DNA of 64,000 bases. It comes from Setoptus koraiensis (taxonomy: Eukaryota > Animalia > Arthropoda). Position 1 is the stretch's first letter, and each line of letters starts with the position of its first letter. Of this stretch, positions 9,930 to 37,700 are shown piece after piece. Below the pieces are notes generated by a model. That model made no database searches. It saw only the letters and a program-made list of their open reading frames with translations, and had not been told where the DNA came from. Made by a program: the position numbers and the translations under genes. The DNA is taken from NCBI GenBank assembly GCA_048013815.1, contig CM106585.1:22506001-22570000 (forward strand). The letters run 5' to 3'.

Positions 9930-11504
9930 TCAGAACATACATAGAGGGCTATCATAGACCATTTCTAGGTTAACTTTATGACCAACTAAATCCCTGATGT
10001 TGTCTATCTTAGATTTTATCATTGTGGGACGCTCCAAAGATAGTCCCCACGCAATTGCATTCACATCGTCGGGTAAACCCAATGCAGTGAGCATCTCTGA
10101 TCGGAATACACCACAATTGCCCACTTCAACCTCTTTACCTAGGCCCTCATGATAGCTGAATATCTCCATACTTGGCATAGTATAAGGATTGTATGTCGTT
10201 TTAAACTTGAGTTCTCCAAGACCAAGTAGGTTGAAGAAGGTCCTCAAAACATCCTTCAGATCACCTTCGGTGAGATTTCTATCGAGATAGACCCCTTCAA
10301 CTTGATTGAACTCAGCGAGATGTGTCGCGTCTAATGTTTCGTTTCTGAAAACCCTATCTATGCTGAAGAATTTTGCCGGCGTGAATGGTGTATTCTTGGG
10401 TTTCATTTTGTGCTCATTAGCAATCTTGTAGATCATCCTAGCCGTCACAGCTGTTGTATGTGTCCTAAAAACGTTTCTGGTTGATTCCTCTTCACTCCAC
10501 TTATACTGATATCCTAGCGGCCACGACTTATCTGCGTTACCAGAATGTGCACTCTGAACTCTACGAACTAATTCTCTGTCCTCAATCTTAGCGCACGATT
10601 CAGGGTTTTTGATGAAGAATGTATCCTGGGAATCTCGAGCAGGATGATCTTGGGGCACAAAAAGTGCATCGAAGTTCCAGAAGGAACTTTCTACGTAATT
10701 GTCTGTAGGCATCTCAGAGAATCCCATGTCGAGAAAGGTCTTCTTGAACTGCTCTCTCACTAAATGCAATGGATGCTGGTGCCCAGGTGTATCTGGAAGA
10801 CCTAGAGCATCGAAGTTGTAGGCCTTGAATTTCTTTGTTTTCCATTCGTTCGATACAACTTGATCCAGGGTGATATCAGTCTCGCCAGTTTCGATGGTCA
10901 AACTGAATTTTGGGCCCTTTTTCAGCTCCAGATATTTAATCACTGTAGCAGTGACCAGCTTTCTGCTACTCAAATCAGATGCTGGGAGAAAATTAGGATT
11001 ATCAGGACTATAAGAGCCTTCTTGAATTGCCTTCAACGTTCTGAAAACTCTATCCTCAACATGGGACACGGTTCGCTTTATCTGTTTTGTTTCCTTATCC
11101 ATACAAATCCACTTATTTCGCATGGCTGTACTGAAACCCACTTTGCCTATGGTCAAATCTTGGAATTTTTTCATTAATTCAACCTGCTCAATGCCTGAAT
11201 TTTCAGGTATACAATTGAACAAGCGCACCTCATGACTGACACCATCCTCAACGATTTTCGCGGCCTCTTTGGTGAGTTCAAGTTTTTTGAAATCTTTCAT
11301 CTGACTCTCCAGGAATTGTTTGGAATCTCCAGTGGAGTCAGCAGCTTTCGTCGAGATACTCTTGATTGCTCCGATAATTCTCTGGTGATCGACATTGAGT
11401 TTTTTAGCTAAATCTAAACTACTGATAGGGTCTACCTCGGTTGCATCCAACAGACCGAGTAGACTGCCGGCAGCTAACTCGGGCGGCGTGGGAGACTCCG
11501 ACAT
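9930..11504 (-). CDS. FARSA: Phenylalanyl-tRNA synthetase alpha subunit, cytosolic (intronless, 524 aa)
   Basis: Uninterrupted ORF with class II PheRS-alpha motifs: HQHPL, VESSFWNFDALFVPQDHPARDSQDTFF, RTHTT, KFFSIDRVFRNETLDATHLAEFNQVEG, YNPYT-PSME, AWGLSLERPTMIK, HKVNLEMV. AATAAA overlaps the stop codon (TGAATAAA, 9925-9932). Confidence 0.98.
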   Translation of the reverse strand: MSESPTPPELAAGSLLGLLDATEVDPISSLDLAKKLNVDHQRIIGAIKSISTKAADSTGDSKQFLESQMKDFKKLELTKEAAKIVEDGVSHEVRLFNCIPENSGIEQVELMKKFQDLTIGKVGFSTAMRNKWICMDKETKQIKRTVSHVEDRVFRTLKAIQEGSYSPDNPNFLPASDLSSRKLVTATVIKYLELKKGPKFSLTIETGETDITLDQVVSNEWKTKKFKAYNFDALGLPDTPGHQHPLHLVREQFKKTFLDMGFSEMPTDNYVESSFWNFDALFVPQDHPARDSQDTFFIKNPESCAKIEDRELVRRVQSAHSGNADKSWPLGYQYKWSEEESTRNVFRTHTTAVTARMIYKIANEHKMKPKNTPFTPAKFFSIDRVFRNETLDATHLAEFNQVEGVYLDRNLTEGDLKDVLRTFFNLLGLGELKFKTTYNPYTMPSMEIFSYHEGLGKEVEVGNCGVFRSEMLTALGLPDDVNAIAWGLSLERPTMIKSKIDNIRDLVGHKVNLEMVYDSPLCMF

Positions 11505-12711: not shown

Positions 12712-15700
12712 ATGGCCATCTATGACCAAGAGTATATCACCCGCTTCTATCAATATCCTGCTGTACAACAGGCGGAGTTGGAACAAAAGTTGAAATTACT
12801 TTCCAGGCATCATGATCGTATTGTCGATGTTAACTTGGAGCATTGCTTTTACGTTGCCTCTTCAGGTATCTATTCTATGATGATTGAGTCTATCTGATTA
12901 TAGCCGTCATACACACATGCATCATAATCATAATAATTAAAAAATGTTCATTTTCCTTTCAATGTAAATTTTGAAGCCCCTCTGAGTGACGAGGAACGCA
13001 AACAAATCGAGTGGCTGATTGACCCAAGTGGCGATGTGAGAAATCAATCGCATTTCGATACACTATTCAGTGGGCGCGACGACGAAGTAGTCGTTGTATT
13101 TGAGATTGGTCCAAGATTAAATTTTTGCACTCCATTCTCAACTCAGGCCGTCTCAATTATCAGATTTTCGTGTGGACCCACCAGCAGTGTCTATCGAATT
13201 GAACGTTCGAAAATCTACCGAATTATCTATAGAAAGGATGGCTCACAGGAGGATATTTGCAGGGAAAGCCTTGAGGATTACACAGTGACTGTGTTGAGCA
13301 GACTTCTCTATGATAGAATGGTAGAGACGGTCTACGAAAAGCCAATCACAAGTTTCAAATCTGTTTCAAATGATGTGAATGCCAACCAAGATAAAGAAAT
13401 ATTGCCGAACAATGAGGTGGACATTATTGGCAACGGTGCGGATGCTCTCAAGTCAATTAGTAGCAAATTGGGCCTGTTCTTTGATCAGTGGGACATTGCT
13501 TTCTATGTCAATTTGTTCACCAATATCATCAAACGAAATCCCACCGTTGTGGAATGTTTTGATTTGGCCCAATCAAATAGTGAACATTCAAGACACTGGT
13601 TCTTCAAGGGCATATTAGACATCGAGGGGCGCGGTGTGGTGAGCAAGTCATTGATGGATTTGGTGTCAGCCACACAAAACAATTCGAACCGTAACAATGT
13701 TATTAAATTTGAGGACAATTCAAGCGCCATTAGAGGATTTTCAGAGCTCAACATAATTAAACCATTCAATTCTACAGAGGCTTCGTTGATGCAGATCAAA
13801 CCAAACCAAACTAGACATATTATATTCACTGCCGAGACGCACAATTTTCCCACTGGCGTTGCCCCATTTCCGGGCGCCGCAACAGGCACTGGCGGCCGCA
13901 TTCGTGATTGTCAAGCCACCGGGCGTGGAGCCCATTGCATCGCGGGCACGGCGGGCTACTCATTCGGCAATCTGTTGATAGACGATTACGAGCTACCATG
14001 GGAAAAGGCAAATGAGGCCTACCCCAACAATTTGGCCACACCGGCCAGAATAGCCATTGAGGCTAGCAATGGTGCCAGCGATTATGGCAACAAATTTGGT
14101 GAGCCAATTATATCTGGTTTTGCAAGAAGTTTTGGAATGCGCTTACCAGTAGTGCAAGAACAAGGCGAGGAGCCTGGCCAAACGGGCTCCACTGGCGACA
14201 GATGGGAATATCTGAAACCGATAATGTTCACGGGAGGAATCGGTAGTATTGATGATAAATATATTAAGAAAGTTAGGCCCGATAAAGGCATGAAAGTGGC
14301 CAAGTTGGGTGGGCCCGTGTACCGTATTGGCATTGGTGGCGGAGCGGCTAGCTCGGCCACAGTCACAAACAAAAGTAACAAACAAATTGACGAGCTCAAC
14401 TTTAATGCAGTGCAACGAGGTGATCCCGAAATGGAACAAAAACTGAATCGTCTAATTAGAGCTTGCATAGAGTACAATGGCAACGGATTAGAGGATCAAT
14501 CGAGCAACACTGATTTCAATCCTATTTTGTCTATTCATGACCAAGGCGCCGGTGGCAACGGCAATGTTCTGAAGGAAATTGTTGAGCCTATGGGCGCCAT
14601 AATAGACGCAAACAAATTTACATTGGGCGATCCCACCATCAACATATTGGAATTGTGGGCGGCCGAATATCAGGAAAGCGATGCCATTCTCACTGGCGGT
14701 GTTGGCTCAGATGACGAGAAATTGTTGAAGAAAATCTCAAAACGTGAAAAGGTCAATGTGGACATTGTTGGCGAGGTAAGCGACGATGGCCAGATGAAAG
14801 TGTGCAACTTTGTCCGACATCAACACGACCGAATGTATCCCATAGACCTGAAATTGGATTATGTCATCGGGTCCATGCCGAGAAAATTGTTCAACCTCAA
14901 AGATTATTGTCAGCAGCCCATTATTAGTGGCGGCCGATTAGCGATTGGCGCGCATCAAAATTCATTACTGTTGCATGGTGTCTTGGAACGAGTGCTCAAA
15001 TTGCCCAGTGTTGCCTCAAAGCGCTACTTGACCACCAAAGTGGACCGTTGTGTCACCGGTTTGATAGCCGGCCAACAATGTTTGGGCCCGTTGCATACGC
15101 CAATCGGTGACTATGGACTGATATCGCTGAGTCATTTCGATTATCGAGGTTCTGTTACATCAATTGGCGAACAACCGATCAAGGGCCTGCTCAGTCCCAA
15201 GGCAAACGCACACATGAGCGTTGCCGAGGCTCTCACAAACATGATGTTTTGTGTAGTCACCTGTTTGGAGGATGTCAAGTGCAGCGCTAATTGGATGTGG
15301 GCAGCTAAATTGCCGGGCGAAGGGGCCAAGCTGGTGGACGCTTGCCAGGCCATGTGTCAGCTAATGTCAGAGCTTGGTATTGCCGTTGACGGTGGCAAAG
15401 ATTCTCTGTCTATGATGGCCACAGTGGATAGGAATAACTCTAGCCTGATTAAAGCACCCGAAAGATCAGAAAAATCATCAAGTAGTGATGAGCTAGACAG
15501 TGAGAGGCCCGAACAAGAGATAGTGAAATCGCCTGGTACGTTGGTTATAAGCGCCTATGCACCGGTGCCCGATATCAGATGTAAAGTGACACCCATTATG
15601 GAGTGTCTGCCAACTAGTCGCTTAATCTGGCTGAATATGTCGCACAATTGTAATGCTCAAGAGCATTTTAAGCCAAGATTGGGAGGCTCAGCTCTGGCTC

Positions 15701-17148
15701 AATCATTTGGCCAGCTGGCCGTGGACGAAGCGCCCGAAATCAACGATGCCTCTCTGCTGAAATCTGGCTTTAATATGGTTCAACAACTGATTAAAGACGG
15801 AATTTGCACTGCCGGCCATGACATCAGCGACGGAGGACTGTTGGTTTGTCTCATAGAAATGGCCCTAGCGAGTCACTCTGGTCTAGATTGTAATTTCAGC
15901 AAGGAGGCCTCGCTCAAAAATATCAAAGAACCGGTCAAAATTGACGATTGCCTGAGATACATGTTTGCTGAAGAGTGCGGCATCATTTTGGAAGTTGACA
16001 CTAGCAAGATGCCAATGACGCAAATTCTAGCCAAATGTCGTGAAAAACATTTGCAGGCACAAGATATTGGCGCCGGCTCCTACAATGATCAACAGGTGAA
16101 AATAAGATTTTTCAATCAACTCATAGTCAATTATAACGACAATAACACGCTGCGACAACAATGGGAAGAGACGAGCAAACGCTTGGATTTGATGCAAGCC
16201 AATGAGGTGTGTGTCCGGCAAGAGTACACTGGCATGAGCGAGCGGCCCGTTAAACCAAACTGGAAATTAACATTTGATGCTAATAAAGTGAAAATATTAC
16301 AAATAGGCCAAGATTTTCACTATCTGACACCGAGACCTCAAGTGGCTGTTGTGCGCGAAGAGGGCATCAATGGCGACAGAGAAATGATCGCAAGTCTTTG
16401 TCTGGCGGGCTTCGACGTGTTCGATGTCACCGTCACCGATTTGACGGGCGAGCGGGGCCTCAGTTTGAGGCAATACAAAGGACTTATATTTCCAGGCGGA
16501 TTTTCTTATGGCGACGTATTTGGTTCGGGTCGTGGCTGGGCGGCAACAATGAAATTCAATCAACATCTCAATCAGGAATTAATGCATTTTCGCCAAAGAC
16601 CAGACACATTTTCCTTGGGTGTTTGCAACGGATGCCAGCTGATGTGTTTGTTGGGTTTCTTCGATAAAATGGACACAGATCCGTTTGCCGAGCCGTCTGT
16701 TCAATTGACACAAAACGATTCGGGCCGTTTCGAGTGCAGATTTGTCAATATCAGGATAGAAGCTAACACTAATTCTATTATGCTTAAACAGATGCAGTCA
16801 AGTTGTTTTGGTGTTTGGGTGGCTCATGGCGAGGGCAAGTTTGAGCTCAGTGGCAAGGACAAATATAAAGCAGAGCAAGACGAACGTATCGCCATGAAAT
16901 ATGTTGACGACTTTGGGGAGCCAACACAACAATATCCATTAAATCCAAATGGAAGCAAATTTGCTGTGGCTGCAATATGCAGCACCGATGGCAGACATTT
17001 GGCCATGATGCCTCATCCGGAAAGATGCACCCAAATGTGGCAGTGGCCTTACGTTTTGCCAGAGTGGAAAACCGGCGAGAAGCGTATCGACGTGAGCCCC
17101 TGGAACAAGATGTTTGTGAACGCTTTTGAATTTTGCACACAATGTTAG
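12712..17148 (+). CDS. PFAS: Phosphoribosylformylglycinamidine synthase (FGAM synthase, PurL); join(12712..12865,12977..17148)
   Basis: Motifs EIGPRLNF.T, DLAQSNSEHSRHWFF, AETHNFPTGVAPFPGAATGTGGRIRD, IHDQGAGGNGN, GGKDSLSM, GHDISDGGL, GGFSYGDV, LGVCNGCQ (catalytic Cys), MPHPER. A phase-1 GT..AG intron at 12866-12976 (111 bp) joins ...FYVASS to APLSDEERKQIEWLID in frame. AATAAA at 17173-17178. Confidence 0.97.
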
Positions 17149-25326: not shown

Positions 25327-27302
25327 ATGACATTATATAATAATAGCAATAATTCTAATAATTATGATACTAAAATAATAAACAATTTATCGTCCAATCG
25401 TTTTATTAACTCAAAACTACAACGACTACAACAACAACAACCAAACCATTCGTCATCGCCAATAATCGCGTCTTATGTCAATCTCGCTCAATATTCGAAC
25501 AACAATGTTAATCTCGTTGAAATGATCGATAACACTAATATTGTTGTCAATCAAACGATTGTATGTGATGATGATGAACAACAAACAAACAAAACAAATG
25601 CTGCCTCTATTTCTAATCAAACTATCAATGATGGTAACATATATAAAACTGTAACGACAAATGCAAACAATAATTACGGTGATGATACTATTTCGCATCA
25701 ACAACGAACAACTATTGTTACAAATCGACATCAATTGCCGCCACCGTCATCATCATCACCACAACCGGTCATGCTATCAAATCAATGCGACCTGAACTAT
25801 AACAATTGCCAAAAAAACAATTCGTCCACGGCAATTCACAACACGCAATCGTCCCAACAACATCAACAACTATCACGTAACCCTTCATTAAAAACAATCA
25901 ATCAATTACAACAACAAAATCTAAAGAAAAACTCTGATTTAACTACAGTTCACGTTGTTGTTGGTAATGAGGCTTGCGATCTCGATTCGGCAGTATCATG
26001 CCTGTTAATGTTCCATATCTTGACCAAAATGTCGGACGGCATCAATGGAAAAGATAAAGTCAATACATTGTACATACCCTTGCTCAATACTACAAGAGAT
26101 TTACTTGAAAGCAAGAGCGAAGTGCTATGGTTCCTCAAGAAAACTCTCAATATTGACAAGTCATTTTTGACTTGCAAGGATGACATCGACTGGAAGGAAA
26201 TAAAGAAGAGTAAGTATTCTCATTGACAATCTATTCTGCCATCGAAATCGATCATATTGCTCTAACGCTCATCCAATATGGATTATCTTGTATTTTCATC
26301 ACCTTCTCATCTACAGCGGGAGTTGAAGTCCTCATCACCCTGGTTGATCATAATTACAGCGAGGAATTTGACAATATTGGCAAAATTGTTGAGATTATAG
26401 ATCATCATCCTATCATGAATCGCGATTGGTTATTTGCCAACCATTCCAGTTTAAGATTAACTCTTGATCCAACTGTTGGCTCTTGTACCACTCTAGTAGC
26501 GGAGAGACTCTTTAATATATACGCTGAACATCATGTAGCCGATGAGATTTTACTATTAATTTACGGAACAGTCCTTTTAGACACTATTTGCCTGTCAGAG
26601 AAAGCCAAACGTTTTACACGCCGTGATGTGTACCTACTAAAGAAACTAGATACCTTAATGGGTTCGAAGCGTCCTTCCAGAGATGAATTGTACAAACAAC
26701 TAGTGGAGGTGAAAAATACCACAAAAGAACTGAACTTTGAAAAGCTAATGAAACGAGATTTAAAAGTTTTCAAAGATGTAAATGGCCTTAGAGTTGGTAT
26801 TGCGTCATTGTTCGGCATGGCAGCCAAAGAAGCTCTAGGTTTGGCCGCCAATATTAATTTAGATGTTTTCTTTCAGCAACACAAGTACGAAGCATTTATT
26901 ATAATGGGTCTAGTAACAGACGTGGACCATATCGATAGTATATCACGTGATTTAGTGGTTATTTCGGCCAATGAAAACTTATTCCAAGAGTTGACAACGA
27001 TATTTGAGGCCGAATCTAGCAAATTGGATCTAGAAATTGTCGAGACCAATCATAACAATATAGAGGATTGCAGCGTTAGGAAACAGGAACAAAATCCTCT
27101 CGTTTTTTATAGAGCACGAATCTATTTACAAAAGAATGTGACGTCTTCTAGAAAAGTTGTTGCGCCGCTTGTCTTGAAAGTTTTACACGACGGAGCCAGC
27201 AAAAACAATGATTTAAAATCTTCTGATCTATCGACCGTCATTGAACCTAAGTCGGAAAAGTTGTGTCAACCTGATGAGAATGCTGTTGATAATGAAATCT
27301 AG
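25327..27302 (+). CDS. PRUNE1: Prune-family exopolyphosphatase/phosphodiesterase (DHH + DHHA2); join(25327..26209,26317..27302); start codon uncertain
   Basis: HVVVGNEACDLDSAVS, LVDHN, EIIDHHP, VGSCTTLV, GTVLLDT, RDLK and SRKVVAP motifs. A phase-1 intron at 26210-26316 (gtaagt...ctacag, 107 bp) joins the two track ORFs in frame. First in-frame ATG is at 25327. Confidence 0.93.
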
Positions 27303-29700: not shown

Positions 29701-30275
29701 TTGAACCATTAAGGCCGACACACTAGTGCCGATTTTATGCAACGAATGGCCCTCCTTTCCTAAGGCAAGCGGACAGCGTCAATCTGGCGCCCATCTGAGC
29801 GGCTGAGCTCTGATTCGTGCGATAGCCCAATTATTTCTCACTACCCGTGTAAAACCATATTGGGCCATTTGCAGCGACGAACTATGGCACCACACAAATT
29901 CTAAAATTAACAACTGTATATCCTTATGACGACATATCGGGCTAATTTTGTTGCAGCGCTATAGTATATATCGTGCCTATCAGGTAAACGAAAGAGAAGA
30001 TGCTGCGAGAAAAAGACTCGTTTTATTATCCTGTCTCTTACTGTTTATTGATTCATTTCAGCATTCGTTTTCAACAACAACCTAGCACAATTGAATTTGT
30101 TTCCGGTCGCGAACTCGCTCTCGGTCATTTCCAATCTTCCATCCTTATTCTGCTAAAACATTGTTGATTCGTTTGTTCAATATTCACCAGGTCAAATATA
30201 AGTGTGGTTCCAGCATGTGGTTCCAGCATATAGTTCGTTTAAAGCTGATGAGAACCATCTCAATTTAATGTTGAA

Positions 30276-30458
30276 TCACTTGCGTCCAAGATTTTCCAAA
30301 TCTTGTCCTATTGGGGCAGTAAGCACTCCGTCAAAAATGGATTCTACAAGATTTAGCAAACCTGAATCCTGAGCGAAGCATGGTTGTATTATATCCGTTG
30401 CCGCCATCAGAAAGAAAGCGAACAGGCATAGACAAAGAACAAATGAAGTTTTCATCAT
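30276..30458 (-). CDS. Small secreted peptide precursor, paralog A (60 aa)
   Basis: MMKTSFVLCLCLFAFFLMAATDIIQPCFA|QDSGLLNLVESIFDGVLTAPIGQDLENLGRK: hydrophobic signal peptide with a C-F-A cleavage site; closely similar paralog at 32361-32546. Confidence 0.8.
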   Translation of the reverse strand: MMKTSFVLCLCLFAFFLMAATDIIQPCFAQDSGLLNLVESIFDGVLTAPIGQDLENLGRK

Positions 30459-31421
30459 GATTGGATAATTACGGCCGGTTGAATGATTTTGCGTTTTGCG
30501 TTTGGTGAGTCCTGTGTTGCAATGAATGACAACTAATTGAACTAATTGACAACTATTTGAAGCTGATTACACTTGTCAGGGGAGCTTTCGACTGATGGTA
30601 CCAGAGAGTAAAACAGAGAGTTTAAATACTTTCTCTCAATCGAGAAACTCTAAGCCGAATATTGGAACTGCGACAACTAATTCCGCAATAATTGACTTAC
30701 AATTGATAGTCGAAATCACTCGTTGGGATTTATGAAAATTCCCCATTCCAATAAAACTTCGTGTCTGCCGCCTGCATAAGTAATAAATCTCTGATCCTCT
30801 TTCCTCTGTTGGGAACTTTCAAATTCAAAGCGCCAGACAATTGTCACATGAGTATACTGTATATAATTCCTTTGTTTATGCCGATTTTATGGAAGGTATC
30901 AATTGATTGCAGGCTCTTTTTTGGGCTATCTTAATTATTTTCATCTAGTCAGAGCGCATGAGGCAATTGTTTATTACAGCGAGTGACAAGTTATTGGGTG
31001 CAATCTTTATTTTTAGAGTGTGTGGCTGGTGATGGTACAAATAAAAGTCTCATGTGCCGTCGTATAATCCTGGCTCAAGGCCACTGTTAAGCACCCCAGT
31101 GATAAGATCAAGCCAGACGGGTGAAGCCAGACGTTTCTCTGGTCCACGGTAAGCTCATGTGGTTGCATTCTGGCCGCCGGTGCATAAAAAAAGTCGCTAG
31201 AGTTCTCGCTCGCGGGGAACCGCGTTATGTGATTTATTGGGAAGAGAATGCGCGCATCCCCTGAGTTGCGACCGAGAGGTCTCGCTAGTACCTCTGTCTG
31301 CTTGCTGCCAACTTATTGCTGGTGCTGATGGTGAAACGGTGACACGTAACAGTTCATTTTCCGGGCAAAAGTGGCCGCGTAAGTGTGAGTAACTGATGGC
31401 CATTGTTGTCGGGCGCCAGAT

Positions 31422-31498: not shown

Positions 31499-32360
31499 TG
31501 GCATCGCATGTCAATAGTACCGGCGCGTGTGTCCGGCCCCGGCAACTTGACTGTGCGTCGCTGAAATTGCTGACAGATCGCTGGGACCAATTGACAATTG
31601 TGGACAAAGTTGTTTGTTCGATTGATGAGCTAGATTCTGACTGGGCAATTTCCGACTGTCAAACTCGCTAGCTCGGTAGCCAGAGTTAAAGCATTGAAGA
31701 CAAACAACCTTCGAGATGAATGTTAGACGAAACTTATCTCAGAGTCACTTTGCAGTCTCAACTCACAGGGCGCACACTCTTTTTTTTCCCAACCAATCAC
31801 ATCGGTTCCCCACGACGAAGACTAACGAGAACTCGAGCGACGTTTTTTATGCGCCGGCGGCCTGAATGCAACCACACCAGCGTCTCCGTGTCAGAGACGC
31901 GTCTGGCGTCACTCATTGTTTCATCTTATCACTCGGATGCTCAACAGCGCCCATGAGACAGGATTATTGCCGTCTATTTATTGCGACGGGATGAGTTTCT
32001 GTTCAGGGTTATTATTATTCATGCCTCCACTAAGAGCACACCCCATTGACAAAGATTGCATCTAATTGTTTGTCACTCGTTGCAGAAAACAATTGTCTCA
32101 TGCTCTCTAATGAAATAAAAATCAATAAGATCTCAAACCAAATAGCCGCTTCTTGATAATTTAAATCTATAGCGGATTCAGATCTCAAATAGTGTAACTG
32201 TATAGAGACCGAAACAGAAATCTACTGTGTGAATTCAAAAAATCTAATCGTCAAAACCGCAGAAAAGTGTTTCTTTACCATCGGTGCGGAAGTTTTAGAG
32301 GTGAGGGACGAGATGATACAGATCGACACTGACTACGACACAATATTTGTGGTTCCAAAC

Positions 32361-32546
32361 ATGATGAAAACTTCCTTTGCTTTTTGTCTATGCCTGTTCG
32401 CTTTCTTTCTGATGGTGGCAACGGATATAATACAACCATGCTTCGCCCAGGATCCAGGTTTTCTAAATATTGCCGAGGCTATTTTTAACCAATTGTCTGA
32501 CGTTCTTGACGAACCACCGGATCTAAGCGGTCTTCCATGCAAATAA
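32361..32546 (+). CDS. Small secreted peptide precursor, paralog B (61 aa)
   Basis: MMKTSFAFCLCLFAFFLMVATDIIQPCFA|QDPGFLNIAEAIFNQLSDVLDEPPDLSGLPCK: signal peptide differs from paralog A at only three of the first 29 positions; mature part diverged. Confidence 0.8.
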   Translation: MMKTSFAFCLCLFAFFLMVATDIIQPCFAQDPGFLNIAEAIFNQLSDVLDEPPDLSGLPCK

Positions 32547-32627
32547 TTCATCATTGGATCGAGATGGTCCTCGTCAGCTTTAAAAGAACAATATGCTGGA
32601 ACCACACTTGTTTTTGACCTGGTGAAT

Positions 32628-32850
32628 TGTCTGGAACACTATTTGGCTCTTTATCCAACCGGGGCTTATTTAGATAAAGCTTCCGATGCTTTACAAAAGT
32701 TAGAAGAACGTCTTATGCATAAAAGCTTCGAAGCTGCTGCGCTCTATGTGCGTTTAGGCTATTATAATGCTGCTATTGTAGCAATGAAAAACTTTCAGCA
32801 AGCCTATCCACAAAGTCCTTTCAAGGAAAAAGTACTGCGTCTATTGATTA
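32628..32850 (+). pseudogene. bamD: Internal fragment of a Bacteroidetes outer-membrane assembly lipoprotein BamD (Cardinium/Amoebophilus-like)
   Basis: LEHYLALYPTGAYLDKASDALQKLEERLMHKSFEAAALYVRLGYYNAAIVAMKNFQQAYPQSPFKEKVLRLLI matches the BamD TPR3-5 pattern (YP.S.Y...A...L..L...L..K.F..A.LY...G.Y.AA.....NF...YP.S...E). No signal peptide or N-terminal half; the frame runs into unrelated AT-rich sequence. Confidence 0.82.
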
Positions 32851-33167
32851 TCTTGAATCTAAAAATTATTAAACTGATGGTAAAAAATTTTATGCAATAA
32901 CATAGTTTACGTTTAAAAAATGTTTAGAGAAATTTTTTATAAAAATATAAGTATTATTAAAAATCAATAAATAATGAAACTTTTTCTTTTTTATATATGA
33001 AAAACCAAAAAGGTAAAACTGAAAGATCTGGTAAAATTTTTACTATTTAGCTATTTAAGCGTATTGATTCCATCAGTTGTATAATGGTTGTTTATTTAAA
33101 AATTTTTATTTATAATTGGTGCTAATAATTTTAAAAAAAACTTAATAATGAATTAGTAACTAAAAAA

Positions 33168-33175
33168 TATATTTG
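33168..33175 (+). promoter_or_regulatory. Bacteroidetes-type -7 promoter element (TAnnTTTG)
   Basis: TATATTTG about 150 bp upstream of the ATG at 33326. The start codon has an A-rich leader (ataaaaaaataaaATG) without a Shine-Dalgarno, as is typical of Bacteroidetes. No -33 TTTG seen. Confidence 0.5.
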
Positions 33176-33325
33176 CGTTGTAATTGTCAAAACAAAATAA
33201 AATTTACAGTTCATCTAAGTCAAATAATGGTAAAATTAAATAACTAATTTACCAAGATTATGCATCCATCTTAATTCAGATTGTTGCAACAGTTTCTACT
33301 AATTTTTTAACCATAAAAAAATAAA

Positions 33326-33865
33326 ATGCTATCAAATATCATTAAAAGTAAACTCAATATCTGTAAGGGTAGCCTTTTTATTGGTCTTTTAACTTGTAAC
33401 AGTTTATTCTCTTGTACAAATAGAAAACAGATGTTAGGAATCAAAGACCAAGTATCTCAGACACAACAACCACTAATCATAGACACAGAAGGACGAGATA
33501 CAGAATTTATAGAAATGGGACAATTTGAAAGATCTAGCGTTGCTAGACTATTAGACAATAGTACAGTTAGTCTAAATCAAGCAAGAGGAAAAACTAGCTG
33601 TCCCAAATCGTTAAAATGGGTAACTGTTACTACATTGTTCGCCATAGCTTGCGGTGTTACAGTGTACTATTATTACTTTGATCATTCAACTACAAATAAC
33701 ATAATAAATACAAATAACACAAGCTACCTAGAATCAATAAAAAAACATCTGCTAGAATGGAGAAAAAAATATAAAAAAACATCAAACGAATTTCTAAAAC
33801 AATACACTAACAATACTTATGAACCTATGAAATCCACTACTGATGCAATATTTATTCATAATTAA
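33326..33865 (+). CDS. Hypothetical bacterial lipoprotein/membrane protein, Cardinium-like (179 aa)
   Basis: Intact AT-rich intronless ORF with a basic N-region, a hydrophobic stretch and lipobox LFSC (Cys30), a second TM segment WVTVTTLFAIACGVTVYYYYF and a K/N-rich tail; adjacent to the bamD fragment. Confidence 0.7.
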   Translation: MLSNIIKSKLNICKGSLFIGLLTCNSLFSCTNRKQMLGIKDQVSQTQQPLIIDTEGRDTEFIEMGQFERSSVARLLDNSTVSLNQARGKTSCPKSLKWVTVTTLFAIACGVTVYYYYFDHSTTNNIINTNNTSYLESIKKHLLEWRKKYKKTSNEFLKQYTNNTYEPMKSTTDAIFIHN

Positions 33866-34076
33866 TTAGAATTCATATTAAATATGTCTACTAGGGTAGT
33901 CAATAGGTTACTTATTTCAAGTTTATGTATAAATACCTGACTATGTAAATAGTTTGATTTTAATCAAATTTTTACGCATTTAACTATTAAAAAACTTTAA
34001 TTTTGAATAAAATCGGCTATATATAATCCAAAATGTCAGTACACTCACCCGACCAACCCCTCCCCAACAATTCAAA

Positions 34077-34282
34077 AAAAAAATAAAAAATAAAAAAATA
34101 AAAAAAAAAAAAAAAAAGCAAAACAAAACAAAACAAAAAAAAAAAAAACAAAAAATAAAAAAAAAAAAAAAAAAAAATAAAAAAAAAAAAAAAAAAAACA
34201 ACAATAAAAAAAAAAAAAAAAAAATAAAAAAAAAAAAAAACAAAAAAAATAACTAAAAAATAAAAAAATATAAAAAAAATAA
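34077..34282. repeat. A-rich low-complexity tract at the contig end (probable sequencing artefact)
   Basis: Irregular poly-A with scattered C/T and no G, directly before the N gap. Confidence 0.7.
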
Positions 34283-34782
34283 NNNNNNNNNNNNNNNNNN
34301 NNNNNNNNNNNNNNNNNNNNNNNNNNNNNNNNNNNNNNNNNNNNNNNNNNNNNNNNNNNNNNNNNNNNNNNNNNNNNNNNNNNNNNNNNNNNNNNNNNNN
34401 NNNNNNNNNNNNNNNNNNNNNNNNNNNNNNNNNNNNNNNNNNNNNNNNNNNNNNNNNNNNNNNNNNNNNNNNNNNNNNNNNNNNNNNNNNNNNNNNNNNN
34501 NNNNNNNNNNNNNNNNNNNNNNNNNNNNNNNNNNNNNNNNNNNNNNNNNNNNNNNNNNNNNNNNNNNNNNNNNNNNNNNNNNNNNNNNNNNNNNNNNNNN
34601 NNNNNNNNNNNNNNNNNNNNNNNNNNNNNNNNNNNNNNNNNNNNNNNNNNNNNNNNNNNNNNNNNNNNNNNNNNNNNNNNNNNNNNNNNNNNNNNNNNNN
34701 NNNNNNNNNNNNNNNNNNNNNNNNNNNNNNNNNNNNNNNNNNNNNNNNNNNNNNNNNNNNNNNNNNNNNNNNNNNNNNNNNN
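34283..34782. other. Assembly gap (500 N)
   Basis: Run of N of round length, typical of a scaffold placeholder. Confidence 1.
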
Positions 34783-37700
34783 ATATGAAAACTGGTAACA
34801 AAAACTGGTGTTCATGTCTCATACGTTCATGCGTTTTTCAATGCGCAAAGTAGATTAACTAATGATAACTTAATTAAGAAATGTATATTTATATACATTA
34901 AGTAATGTGCGTATAAGATAGTTGGTATAGTTTTTTGATCTACTTAGTTGGCGCCTGGCAAGGGCATCCATTCGTGTGCATGCAAATCAATTTGAATCTT
35001 ACAAGTCGGCACTGGCAACACTTATTATAGCTATCTATTCACTCGTTTGTTGTGGTCAATTTGATTCGTGTGGCGCAGCTTCAATCTGATCAAATGACCG
35101 ACAACAGCAGCGACAACAACGACGACAACAACAACGACAGCGACAACAACAACAACGACAACGACAACGGCAACGACATGTTGAAAGGAATTGCAAATTT
35201 CATTTTCGTGCAATTAGGCTAGTGATTACTTTCGACACGCTGGCTAGTCCCGTCGCTGTCTTGCTTGGGTTCGTTCAGCGTACACAGTATACGTTATGTT
35301 GTTAGGCATGTAAATTACATCATCTCTTGTGTAACACTTTATTGCACACTTTTTCTCTTGTTCTCAAATTTAGTTTTCATTTCACATTTGTTCGGACCAT
35401 TTCACATCATTGTGAGCTCACACATAATTGACAACAACACTCTCTGGTGGCTATTTTATTTATCCATCTTGATATTTGAAATATCTTGAAATTGATAGAC
35501 CGAACAAACGTGAGCGAACTATGCTCTTGAACAAGACGAATCGGGACGGCATGTATGGCGACAAAACAACTTTGTCATATCTGACTGGTAGGCAGGGCGA
35601 GAGCCACCAACGGTTCATTGGGCTATCCGTTCGCAATTTTATTTTGTATCTTTTATCTGTATTGTATGTATGTATGGTCATGACTCATGAGTCGGTCACT
35701 TTCTCCTTGAAATCACCCCTATACACAGTTCAATTCAATTCATTTCATTTTAACATTGCTGTCAAGCTATCAGTGGTTACTTGCTACAGAAAGATTAGAC
35801 CGGAAGTGGTGCTCACACAAATGCAATCTGTTCTGTTTTTACCGCTACTGTTGTTGTTGTTGTTGTTGCTGCTGCTGCTGTCGCTACTGTTGTTGATAGT
35901 TGAGTAATACAAATTGATCGCACTCACTGGACACGAGAAGCTTTGACCACTCATCACTTAAATCAAAACCTGCTGATGAAGCTATCTCGAGTTGGTCACC
36001 TGTTGCTGCTGCTGCTGCTGTTGCTGTTAGTGTGTTATGTTGTCCATCACTTACGAATTGCAAATTGCCACTAGCTTGAATCGGCTAGCCAGCGATCAAG
36101 CCAATTTAAAGCATTCACTCTACTCTAGCGTGCATACTACAGGCCAGTAGTGAATCTGAATACAAATTCCAATTCCAACTTTTACTTATGCTTCTATTTC
36201 AAATACAATTATTCCAAAGCGACACAGAGCAAGCGAGAGACTCTTATTAGAGCGAGCATCATCGCCACTGAAAGCGACTCACAGTCAGTAATCTATCAAG
36301 CTACTTTTGACAAGACCACTGCTGCTGCTGCTACTAGTGCAACTACTACAACCAATGCTAGTGCAAGTTGCAGCTTATGCAACAACCTGTTACTTATTAG
36401 CCATTCATACTAACTAACTATAACATTGCTACTGTTTAATGTTGTTGCTCTTCTTCTTTCTACTCGGATGTGTGATTGTCGATTGATGGTGATGATGTTG
36501 TTTCTCGTATTTAACAATCTAAGCAACAAACAGTGAGATATAAGCAAATTGCATCACGGTCGTCGTCGCCGTCATCAACAAGTCATCATGTCAAGACTTG
36601 ATTTTAGCTTAGCTGCTGCAGTTGAATGTACACTACTGATACGCCACTACTGGTCATCACTGGCCACTTGTTGTGTCCATTCATCATTCGTCATGATATA
36701 TGGACTCTTCTAACGGTCTATCTTAATACGGTTTGTGTGTGTGTTGTGTCAGATAGAAAGATACTAGAGGGCCAGCGAGTGAGTCACTGTTTATCCGTCA
36801 ATGTTGCTCCGTTAGGCATATCGTTAGACAGTGCAAACAACATCAGTCATAAGTAGCAAACAACCTGTTACGACTTATTCATTCATTTGAATAGCTGAAC
36901 AGATATTATCAGTATGACTGCAGTCTATCTATCTCAATTATCAGCTATAGGCTATAACTAATAAATCACCCAACTCTCTCTTTATATGTCGGATATTGCG
37001 CTCAAACGGTCAGTTGTTGGCTGTGCAATCAACCATCCGTCTCCGACTTTACCCCTACATTCCGTTTGATTGGTTTATAGTACAGCCAGTAACAGCGATA
37101 CGCATTCTTGTCTAGGCATAGATATCATTATTATTATTATTATGACGATTACAACAACTACCGATTTACTCCACTCGCAAATCACGATGACAGTTATGGT
37201 CGATAGGTGGCGCTAGCTGGCTCTTTGCATCACGATTCGTAACTGTATGAACTCATAATGAACGGATGTCCCTCTCTCTTTGCACTGCTGATTGGCAGAA
37301 ATGGTTGGCGCCAGCGAGCACCAGATAACCAATGAACGGAAGTGGGTTAGTTGGCGTCCTCTCGGGGTGCAGAGCATATTTTTATCAAGTAAGCGGGCGA
37401 GTGCAACTTGCATGGGACCAATGTGGCGTGTATTGGTGCCATATGAAGTGAACTAAACCAATAACACATAGATATATGAGCCTGTGAGCAGTGTCAGTTA
37501 CGTAAGACGTTGGCTGACTCGCAATGTTTGTGAGCCCGCCGGGTCTACAATTGCGCACAACATTAGACTGACAGGTGTGAGATAATAAACAACAGGTGAA
37601 TTGTTGTTGCACTAGATGCGCGGCTTTTTGTTGTTGGCTCTGATGCAAATAACTTGCACAGATCATCTGAAGTTGTTGTTGTTGTTGCTGCTGTTCATTA

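Follow-up and report, generated by a model that had tools for sequence, protein, structure and literature searches.

Does the point at which host 3' flanking sequence gives way to bacterial coding sequence mark a genuine insertion of symbiont DNA into an animal genome, or did the assembly join host and bacterial sequence by mistake? The question is raised by a window of 64,000 nucleotides, the whole stretch of DNA analysed here, for which the original prediction had offered both readings. For Wolbachia, the transfer of symbiont DNA into the host nucleus is well documented, and Bacteroidota or Cardinium-like donors have been put forward for some HGT genes of insects. Within the literature that we searched, nuclear inserts from Cardinium were hardly documented: no dedicated report was found, and the phrase 'host genome' is absent from a 2025 Cardinium review (PMC12342168).

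We combined homology searches, sequence composition and a paralog comparison with short-read evidence from four runs (X1, X2, X5 and X7), used in the form of k=31 contigs rather than raw reads. X1 is the probable source sample of the assembly, while X2 represents another sample from another study.

Host setting and the paralog pair

The host portion of the 64-kb window is eukaryotic, with a GC content of ~42%. Two of its genes were observed as single uninterrupted ORFs, cytosolic PheRS-alpha (9930-11504, 524 aa) and FGAR amidotransferase (FGAR-AT, 13036-17148, 1370 aa), and their lack of introns points to an animal host genome that is strongly intron-poor. Among named relatives, the best matches of the PheRS-alpha were to the acariform mites Halotydeus, Medioppia, Oppia, Sarcoptes and Dermatophagoides at 48-54% identity, and the top match overall reached 74%. 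The host would accordingly be an intron-poor acariform mite, probably an eriophyoid.

The foreign stretch adjoins one member of an inverted pair of small genes with signal-peptide-like products of 60-67 aa. Paralog A, a secreted-peptide gene on the minus strand, was delimited from the ORF list, the sequence and an X7 contig; its transcript region spans 30029-30588 and its CDS runs from 30458 to 30276 (60 aa). Paralog B lies on the plus strand with its CDS at 32343-32546 (67 aa, counted from the MMKT start), followed by a 3' flank of ~80 nt up to the junction at 32627. The inverted arms, 30182-30465 and 32354-32627, share 77% identity over 287 nt (blastn), with individual blocks reaching 83-90%.

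A 560-nt X7 contig covered paralog A from 30029 to 30588 with no differences and a depth of 93.5, while the adjacent host DNA had a depth of 0; no X7 contig was found for paralog B. A low-depth contig of 211 nt was also present in this run. From this restriction of host coverage to paralog A, X7 looks like RNA data, with its library type off record. The contig ends 15 nt downstream of a poly(A) signal on the minus strand (AATAAA, 30049-30044), and from these two observations together the 3'UTR of paralog A probably extends from 30275 to ~30029. The position equivalent to the insertion is the hexanucleotide TTCAAT at 30176-30181, which separates the arm end at 30182 from a 59-nt block at 30117-30175 and thus falls inside this probable 3'UTR, in keeping with the earlier placement of the insertion in a 3' flank.

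Several repeats surround the pair. Just upstream of paralog A, the interval 30588-30784 showed a summed contig depth ~10x that of its flanks (925 in X1, 1400 in X2 and 198 in X5) together with many loose contig ends, which points to a dispersed repeat of roughly at least 10 copies. The 1.9-kb spacer between the paralogs, with a GC content of up to 49.5%, holds additional inverted repeats (31064-31208 and 31826-31967, 83-89% complementary), and a contig joint between 30798 and 32103 on opposite strands recurred in three runs; two arms alone thus do not describe the full palindrome. To the right of the scaffold gap described below, trinucleotide tracts of (GAC/AAC)n (35099-35182) and (TGT/TGC)n (35831-35899 and 36001-36033) lie inverted to one another ~700 nt apart, the first of them masked as a repeat in the read mapping. 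A third copy of the 59-nt block, with 3 differences, was found on a low-depth X7 contig, so the block is not unique to paralogs A and B. One flank of this third copy is 47 nt long and contains a 30-nt consensus matching 26846-26875 on the minus strand with 1 mismatch; the other flank is absent from the window.

A truncated bamD fragment at the left junction

The alignment of the paralog arms stops at ...GACCTGGTGAA(T), between 32626 and 32627, so the host homology ends at the junction as had been claimed. Because the T at 32627 is compatible with the host paralog as well as with Cardinium bamD, the two sequences overlap by 1 nt. The bacterial sequence that begins there occupies 32627-32848 on the plus strand (222 nt, 74 codons). 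It is in frame and free of stop codons, and it is truncated mid-gene at both ends, leaving it without a start codon, signal peptide or C-terminus; the frame comes in from the host 3'UTR and runs out into unrelated AT-rich DNA. The predicted identity of this piece as a mid-gene Bacteroidetes BamD fragment was borne out by two profiles, Pfam YfiO (E=1.4e-7, 31.9 bits against a cut-off of 25, profile positions 114-190 of 203) and TIGR03302 BamD of NCBIfam (8e-10), as well as by its matches to Cardinium.

The closest counterpart was the bamD of Cardinium cByotN1/cBcalN2 from Brevipalpus flat mites. At the nucleotide level the fragment aligned to the gene of Cardinium sp. cBcalN2 without gaps over all 222 nt at 87.4% identity (blastn), corresponding to codons ~166-240 of a 288-codon ORF and, in the cByotN1/cBcalN2 protein of 269 aa, to residues 148-221. 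The fragment thus accounts for no more than about a quarter of the gene, and the features of a working BamD/YfiO (a full length of ~240-290 aa, a lipoprotein signal and a complete TPR domain) are missing. With 74 of ~270-290 codons and no start codon, the fragment cannot function.

To identify the donor, one genome per species was scanned by tblastn across 185,579 species. Five matches were returned, four of them to Cardinium from the hosts Brevipalpus (89% aa identity), Oedothorax (81%), Nabis (67%) and Tipula (62%), while the fifth was irrelevant (44% over 36 residues). Compared with 19 Cardinium BamD proteins, the fragment was 89% identical in amino acids to the cByotN1/cBcalN2 protein and 62-81% identical to the 18 others. 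A maximum-likelihood tree placed it within a Cardinium subclade with support of 100/99; as expected, 74 residues did not resolve its position inside that subclade. The protein comparison and phylogeny that had been proposed as a check therefore both returned Cardinium. No closer bamD donor was found in the metagenome scan.

The 29 nucleotide differences between the fragment and cBcalN2 were distributed as 6, 2 and 21 over codon positions 1, 2 and 3, and the changed codons comprised 18 synonymous and 8 non-synonymous cases. This preponderance of third-position and synonymous differences indicates that most of the divergence arose under selection in living bacteria. A nucleotide divergence of 13% that is mostly synonymous also shows that the donor was a strain other than cByotN1/cBcalN2 and that the copy has undergone little decay since arrival. 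The source of the bamD fragment, judged by these comparisons, was a Cardinium related to, yet distinct from, the Brevipalpus Cardinium.

An AT-rich second piece with an orphan reading frame

The bamD homology terminates between 32848 and 32849, and at the same point the GC content drops from 39% to 24.5%, which fixes the break into far more AT-rich DNA that had been expected at ~32850. The second piece, 32849-34023 on the plus strand (1175 nt), was defined by its composition, its lack of matches and one short-read contig spanning it. All seven of its 500-nt windows had a GC content of 20-31%, below the minimum of 31.2% among 608 host windows in the 64 kb.

Within this piece, an intact orphan ORF of 179 codons (ORF179) was found at 33326-33865 on the plus strand. 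Its longest open frame measures 182 codons, whereas 2000 shuffles of the AT-rich sequence gave none longer than 128; on this basis ORF179 must be a gene that is real now or was so until recently. Its N-terminus (…GLLTCNSLFS-C), judged by eye, resembles a bacterial lipoprotein signal with a lipobox, and one hydrophobic segment is present. No homolog was recovered in a word-indexed search of 5.8 billion proteins, and phmmer against 1.84 billion representatives returned only two low-complexity matches (7e-7 and 1e-5). The best score in the ESM Atlas was 0.69, below any useful level, no Pfam or NCBIfam family was matched, tblastn found nothing in the PLSDB plasmids, and a metagenome scan was likewise negative. 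Exact-protein look-ups of ORF179 and of the paralog A peptide in Logan and other assemblies showed nothing on record. At the DNA level, the second piece had no blastn match to plasmids or phages and no tblastx match to four Cardinium loci. A single-sequence AlphaFold model of ORF179 was unusable (pLDDT 29).

Composition did not speak for Cardinium. The GC content of ORF179 (30.5%) was lower than that of all 19 sampled Cardinium ORFs (33-44%), and its codon usage favoured neither Cardinium nor host, with a log-likelihood ratio per codon (-0.03) that falls between the values for Cardinium ORFs (+0.05 to +0.17) and host ORFs (-0.04 to -0.14). A test for bacterial promoters counted 6 sigma-70-like sites against 9.6 expected from shuffling, that is, no enrichment. 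A mitochondrial (NUMT) origin of the AT-rich piece was considered and rejected on finding no tRNA, no Rfam family and no similarity to mitochondrial proteins in 32500-34282.

The second piece is most likely of bacterial origin. It may be a strain-specific Cardinium region, it may belong to one contiguous donor segment in which a pseudogene fragment of bamD was already present, or it may stem from a different source. Since it has no homolog, a symbiont origin is established for only 16% of the insert (32627-32848). The original prediction of a two-piece symbiont insertion thus held for the first piece, a Cardinium bamD, and was left without such support for the second, where ORF179 has no homolog and neither GC content nor codon usage favours Cardinium.

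Physical continuity with host DNA and copy number

In X1, a single 2582-nt contig covered 32386-34023 with 0 differences and 0 gaps, and thus combines the complete foreign stretch and the two internal junctions with 241 nt of host arm B on the left side. In X2, the same interval was covered by two contigs, one of 1405 nt (32386-33790) with one SNP and one of 1207 nt (33761-34023). The SNP, at position 33356, is T in X2 (fixed) and also present in X5, while the window and X1 carry A; the A>T change is non-synonymous (Asn11Tyr) and falls within the signal peptide predicted for ORF179. This difference makes X2 genetically distinguishable from the window and X1, and the samples are therefore independent.

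The depth of the insert was close to that of its host flanks in both samples, 89.7 compared with 97-110 in X1 and 97.2 compared with 116-133 in X2. Together with contigs (k=31) that cross both junctions, these values bear on the spanning and depth check that had been proposed, at the level of contigs rather than of raw reads. Bin depths over the bamD piece were fully accounted for by the one spanning contig in X1 and X2, and no second contig was found on the piece in either run, nor any extending toward the rest of bamD. Accordingly, there was no sign of a free Cardinium whose bamD is similar at 90% or more.

Past 34023, contigs of X1, X2 and X5 enter a 59-nt match to the reverse complement of 30117-30175 with zero overlap, and the joint between 30175 and 34023 on opposite strands was observed in all three runs. 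This right-hand flank is known as 59 letters at 90% identity or more to the flank of paralog A. As the block lies 6 nt outside the arm of paralog A, the order in B (arm, insert, block) is colinear with the order in A (arm, 6 nt, block), and this colinearity gives an insertion of 1396 nt (32628-34023) with host DNA on both sides. Paralog A, by this alignment, serves as the uninserted (empty-site) reference copy, and its proposed use as a pre-insertion reference extends to both sides, with the flank block resuming after 34023. The insert joins host DNA without interruption at either end, at near host depth.

The contig end and the scaffold gap

The assembled sequence to the right of the insert has a different status. 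The interval 34024-34282 consists of 44 nt followed by a poly-A-rich tract (34068-34282) and has no short-read support: nothing from X1 or X2 maps to 34024-34067, and 34068-34282 was masked as a repeat in the read mapping. The depth of the bin 33937-34133 equals the share of the contig ending at 34023, with 39.6 in X1 (89.7 x 87/197) and 40.1 in X2. We consider 34024-34282 to be probably a long-read or assembly artefact. It is followed by a scaffold gap of 500 N (34283-34782), behind which the real host sequence to the right of the insert lies hidden. Since short-read contigs run 944 nt past 34023 and, from the other side, 1173 nt leftward of 34783, existing short-read data could probably close the gap.

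Structural polymorphism

A different picture was obtained from X5, where host contigs had a depth of 21-27 and the insert 0-5. The outer B arm was not seen in this run, and the inner flank of paralog A (30437-30587) was present at ~6. The majority contig connects 30436 with 32382, on opposite strands, via 33 letters common to both, and this joint produces a hybrid gene with the 5' end of paralog B and the body and 3'UTR of paralog A. The hybrid contig and the low insert depth together show the locus to be structurally polymorphic; the palindromic cassette thus occurs in two or more structural forms, of which the insert-bearing one is the minority in X5. The low insert depth in X5 fits polymorphism, and admixture could be an alternative.

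Discussion

We consider it very probable that 1396 nt of foreign DNA, made up of a Cardinium bamD piece and an AT-rich piece, are integrated in the host nuclear genome as a young neutral relic. The site corresponds to the 3'UTR-equivalent flank of paralog B, ~80 nt past the B stop codon. End joining would have sealed fragmented DNA of lysed intracellular bacteria into a double-strand break in the germ line, which would explain the 1-nt overlap on the left, the zero overlap on the right and the 6 nt of paralog A that are missing at the site. Mid-gene breaks, an overlap of 0-1 nt, few missing target bases and composite pieces are also characteristics of Wolbachia and organelle inserts, and it is from these that we infer end-joining capture. 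The insert would be a relic of a past or undetected Cardinium infection on a haplotype that is still polymorphic, and its youth is suggested by the mostly synonymous bamD divergence and the still open ORF179.

The competing view that reads of a free Cardinium, or of another bacterium, were misjoined to a host contig, with the N gap as the misjoin, draws on a bacterial-type stretch that runs into low-complexity junk and a 500-N gap, on the missing short-read support at 34024-34282, and on contamination being common in mite assemblies (for example PMC12507336). Unbranched k=31 contigs nevertheless span 32627 and 32849 with no difference at either junction, in two distinguishable samples and at approximately host depth, and they re-enter paralog-like host flank after 34023; no other contig carries the bamD piece onward, and the piece itself is cut mid-gene at both ends. 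For a de Bruijn contig to be falsely joined, 30-mers would have to be shared at each junction, and such a join would not recur at host depth in a sample with a different allele. The chimera put forward as an alternative in the original prediction is therefore rejected for junctions 32627 and 32849, its features being found solely at 34024-34282, and as an account of the locus it is extremely improbable. A genuine insertion whose AT-rich part (32849-34023) did not come from Cardinium carries appreciable weight, if short of being the probable case. In that case, some other bacterium or AT-rich source would have supplied the piece as filler, either during the same repair event or through a second insertion next to the first, as the failure of ORF179 and its flanking DNA to match anything would suggest (four Cardinium loci, PLSDB plasmids and phages included), along with a GC content under that of all 19 Cardinium ORFs and a codon score between those of Cardinium and host. 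The piece does, however, directly adjoin the Cardinium piece on the same haplotype, and Cardinium genomes carry many strain-specific orphan genes. The DNA-level comparison moreover covered ~40 kb of Cardinium, and the donor strain is absent from databases, the best bamD match being 87% at the nucleotide level.

It is unlikely that the insert is functional, either through ORF179 being transcribed and used as a domesticated symbiont gene or through a rewired 3'UTR or expression of paralog B. ORF179 is intact in very AT-rich DNA, where 2000 shuffles reached at most 128 codons, X7 holds a 340-nt contig on 33553-33892 at depth 5, and paralog B has no X7 contig compared with a depth of 93 for paralog A. 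An intact ORF is, however, expected anyway in a young insertion, and with the X7 library type off record a depth of 5 could reflect DNA carry-over. The sole variant in ORF179 is non-synonymous (Asn11Tyr), promoter-like sites are not enriched (6 compared with 9.6 expected), and the insert-bearing haplotype is the minority in X5. No sign of selection on ORF179 was found. A change in paralog B expression through the insertion is possible. We give little credence to the bolder idea of a young, segregating Cardinium fossil in a probably eriophyoid mite lineage, with no free symbiont this close now seen, whose lipoprotein-type ORF is host-transcribed next to strongly expressed secreted-peptide genes in an early stage of co-option. 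A young neutral relic remains our preferred reading, and the comparisons below refer to it.

The insert belongs to a known class, endosymbiont-to-host nuclear insertions, of which it is a genuine and ordinary relic with an unusual donor in Cardinium. Wolbachia nuclear transfers ('nuwts') and other endosymbiont inserts have been described from arthropods and nematodes (Dunning Hotopp et al. 2007, as cited in PMC12342168), and further endosymbiont-to-host insertions from Glossina (PMC3998919) and Drosophila ananassae (PMC4558871). Like nuwts, the locus holds fragmentary, mostly non-functional pieces of a heritable intracellular bacterium in nuclear DNA at host copy number, with mid-gene breakpoints and little or no microhomology, and nuwts too are often composites of non-adjacent pieces. 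Unlike nuwts, its donor is a member of the Bacteroidota, the insert is just 1.4 kb long, no free symbiont this close was seen in the samples, and the empty site can be read within the locus from an inverted paralog a few kb away. There is also a resemblance to NUMTs, in which AT-rich DNA of organelle type, here of symbiont type, is patched into nuclear breaks by end joining, whereas the first piece here is unambiguously a bacterial outer-membrane assembly gene.

No concept is changed by this locus, which offers a small worked example of the end-joining capture of bacterial DNA. The case can be checked internally: its donor clade is defined, its junctions are known to the base, a paralog shows the empty site, and polymorphism is in evidence. 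For symbiont PCR and metagenomic screens it is a reason for caution, as a bamD amplicon could be host-genomic. For the mite lineage itself, the insert may serve as a marker of an earlier Cardinium infection.
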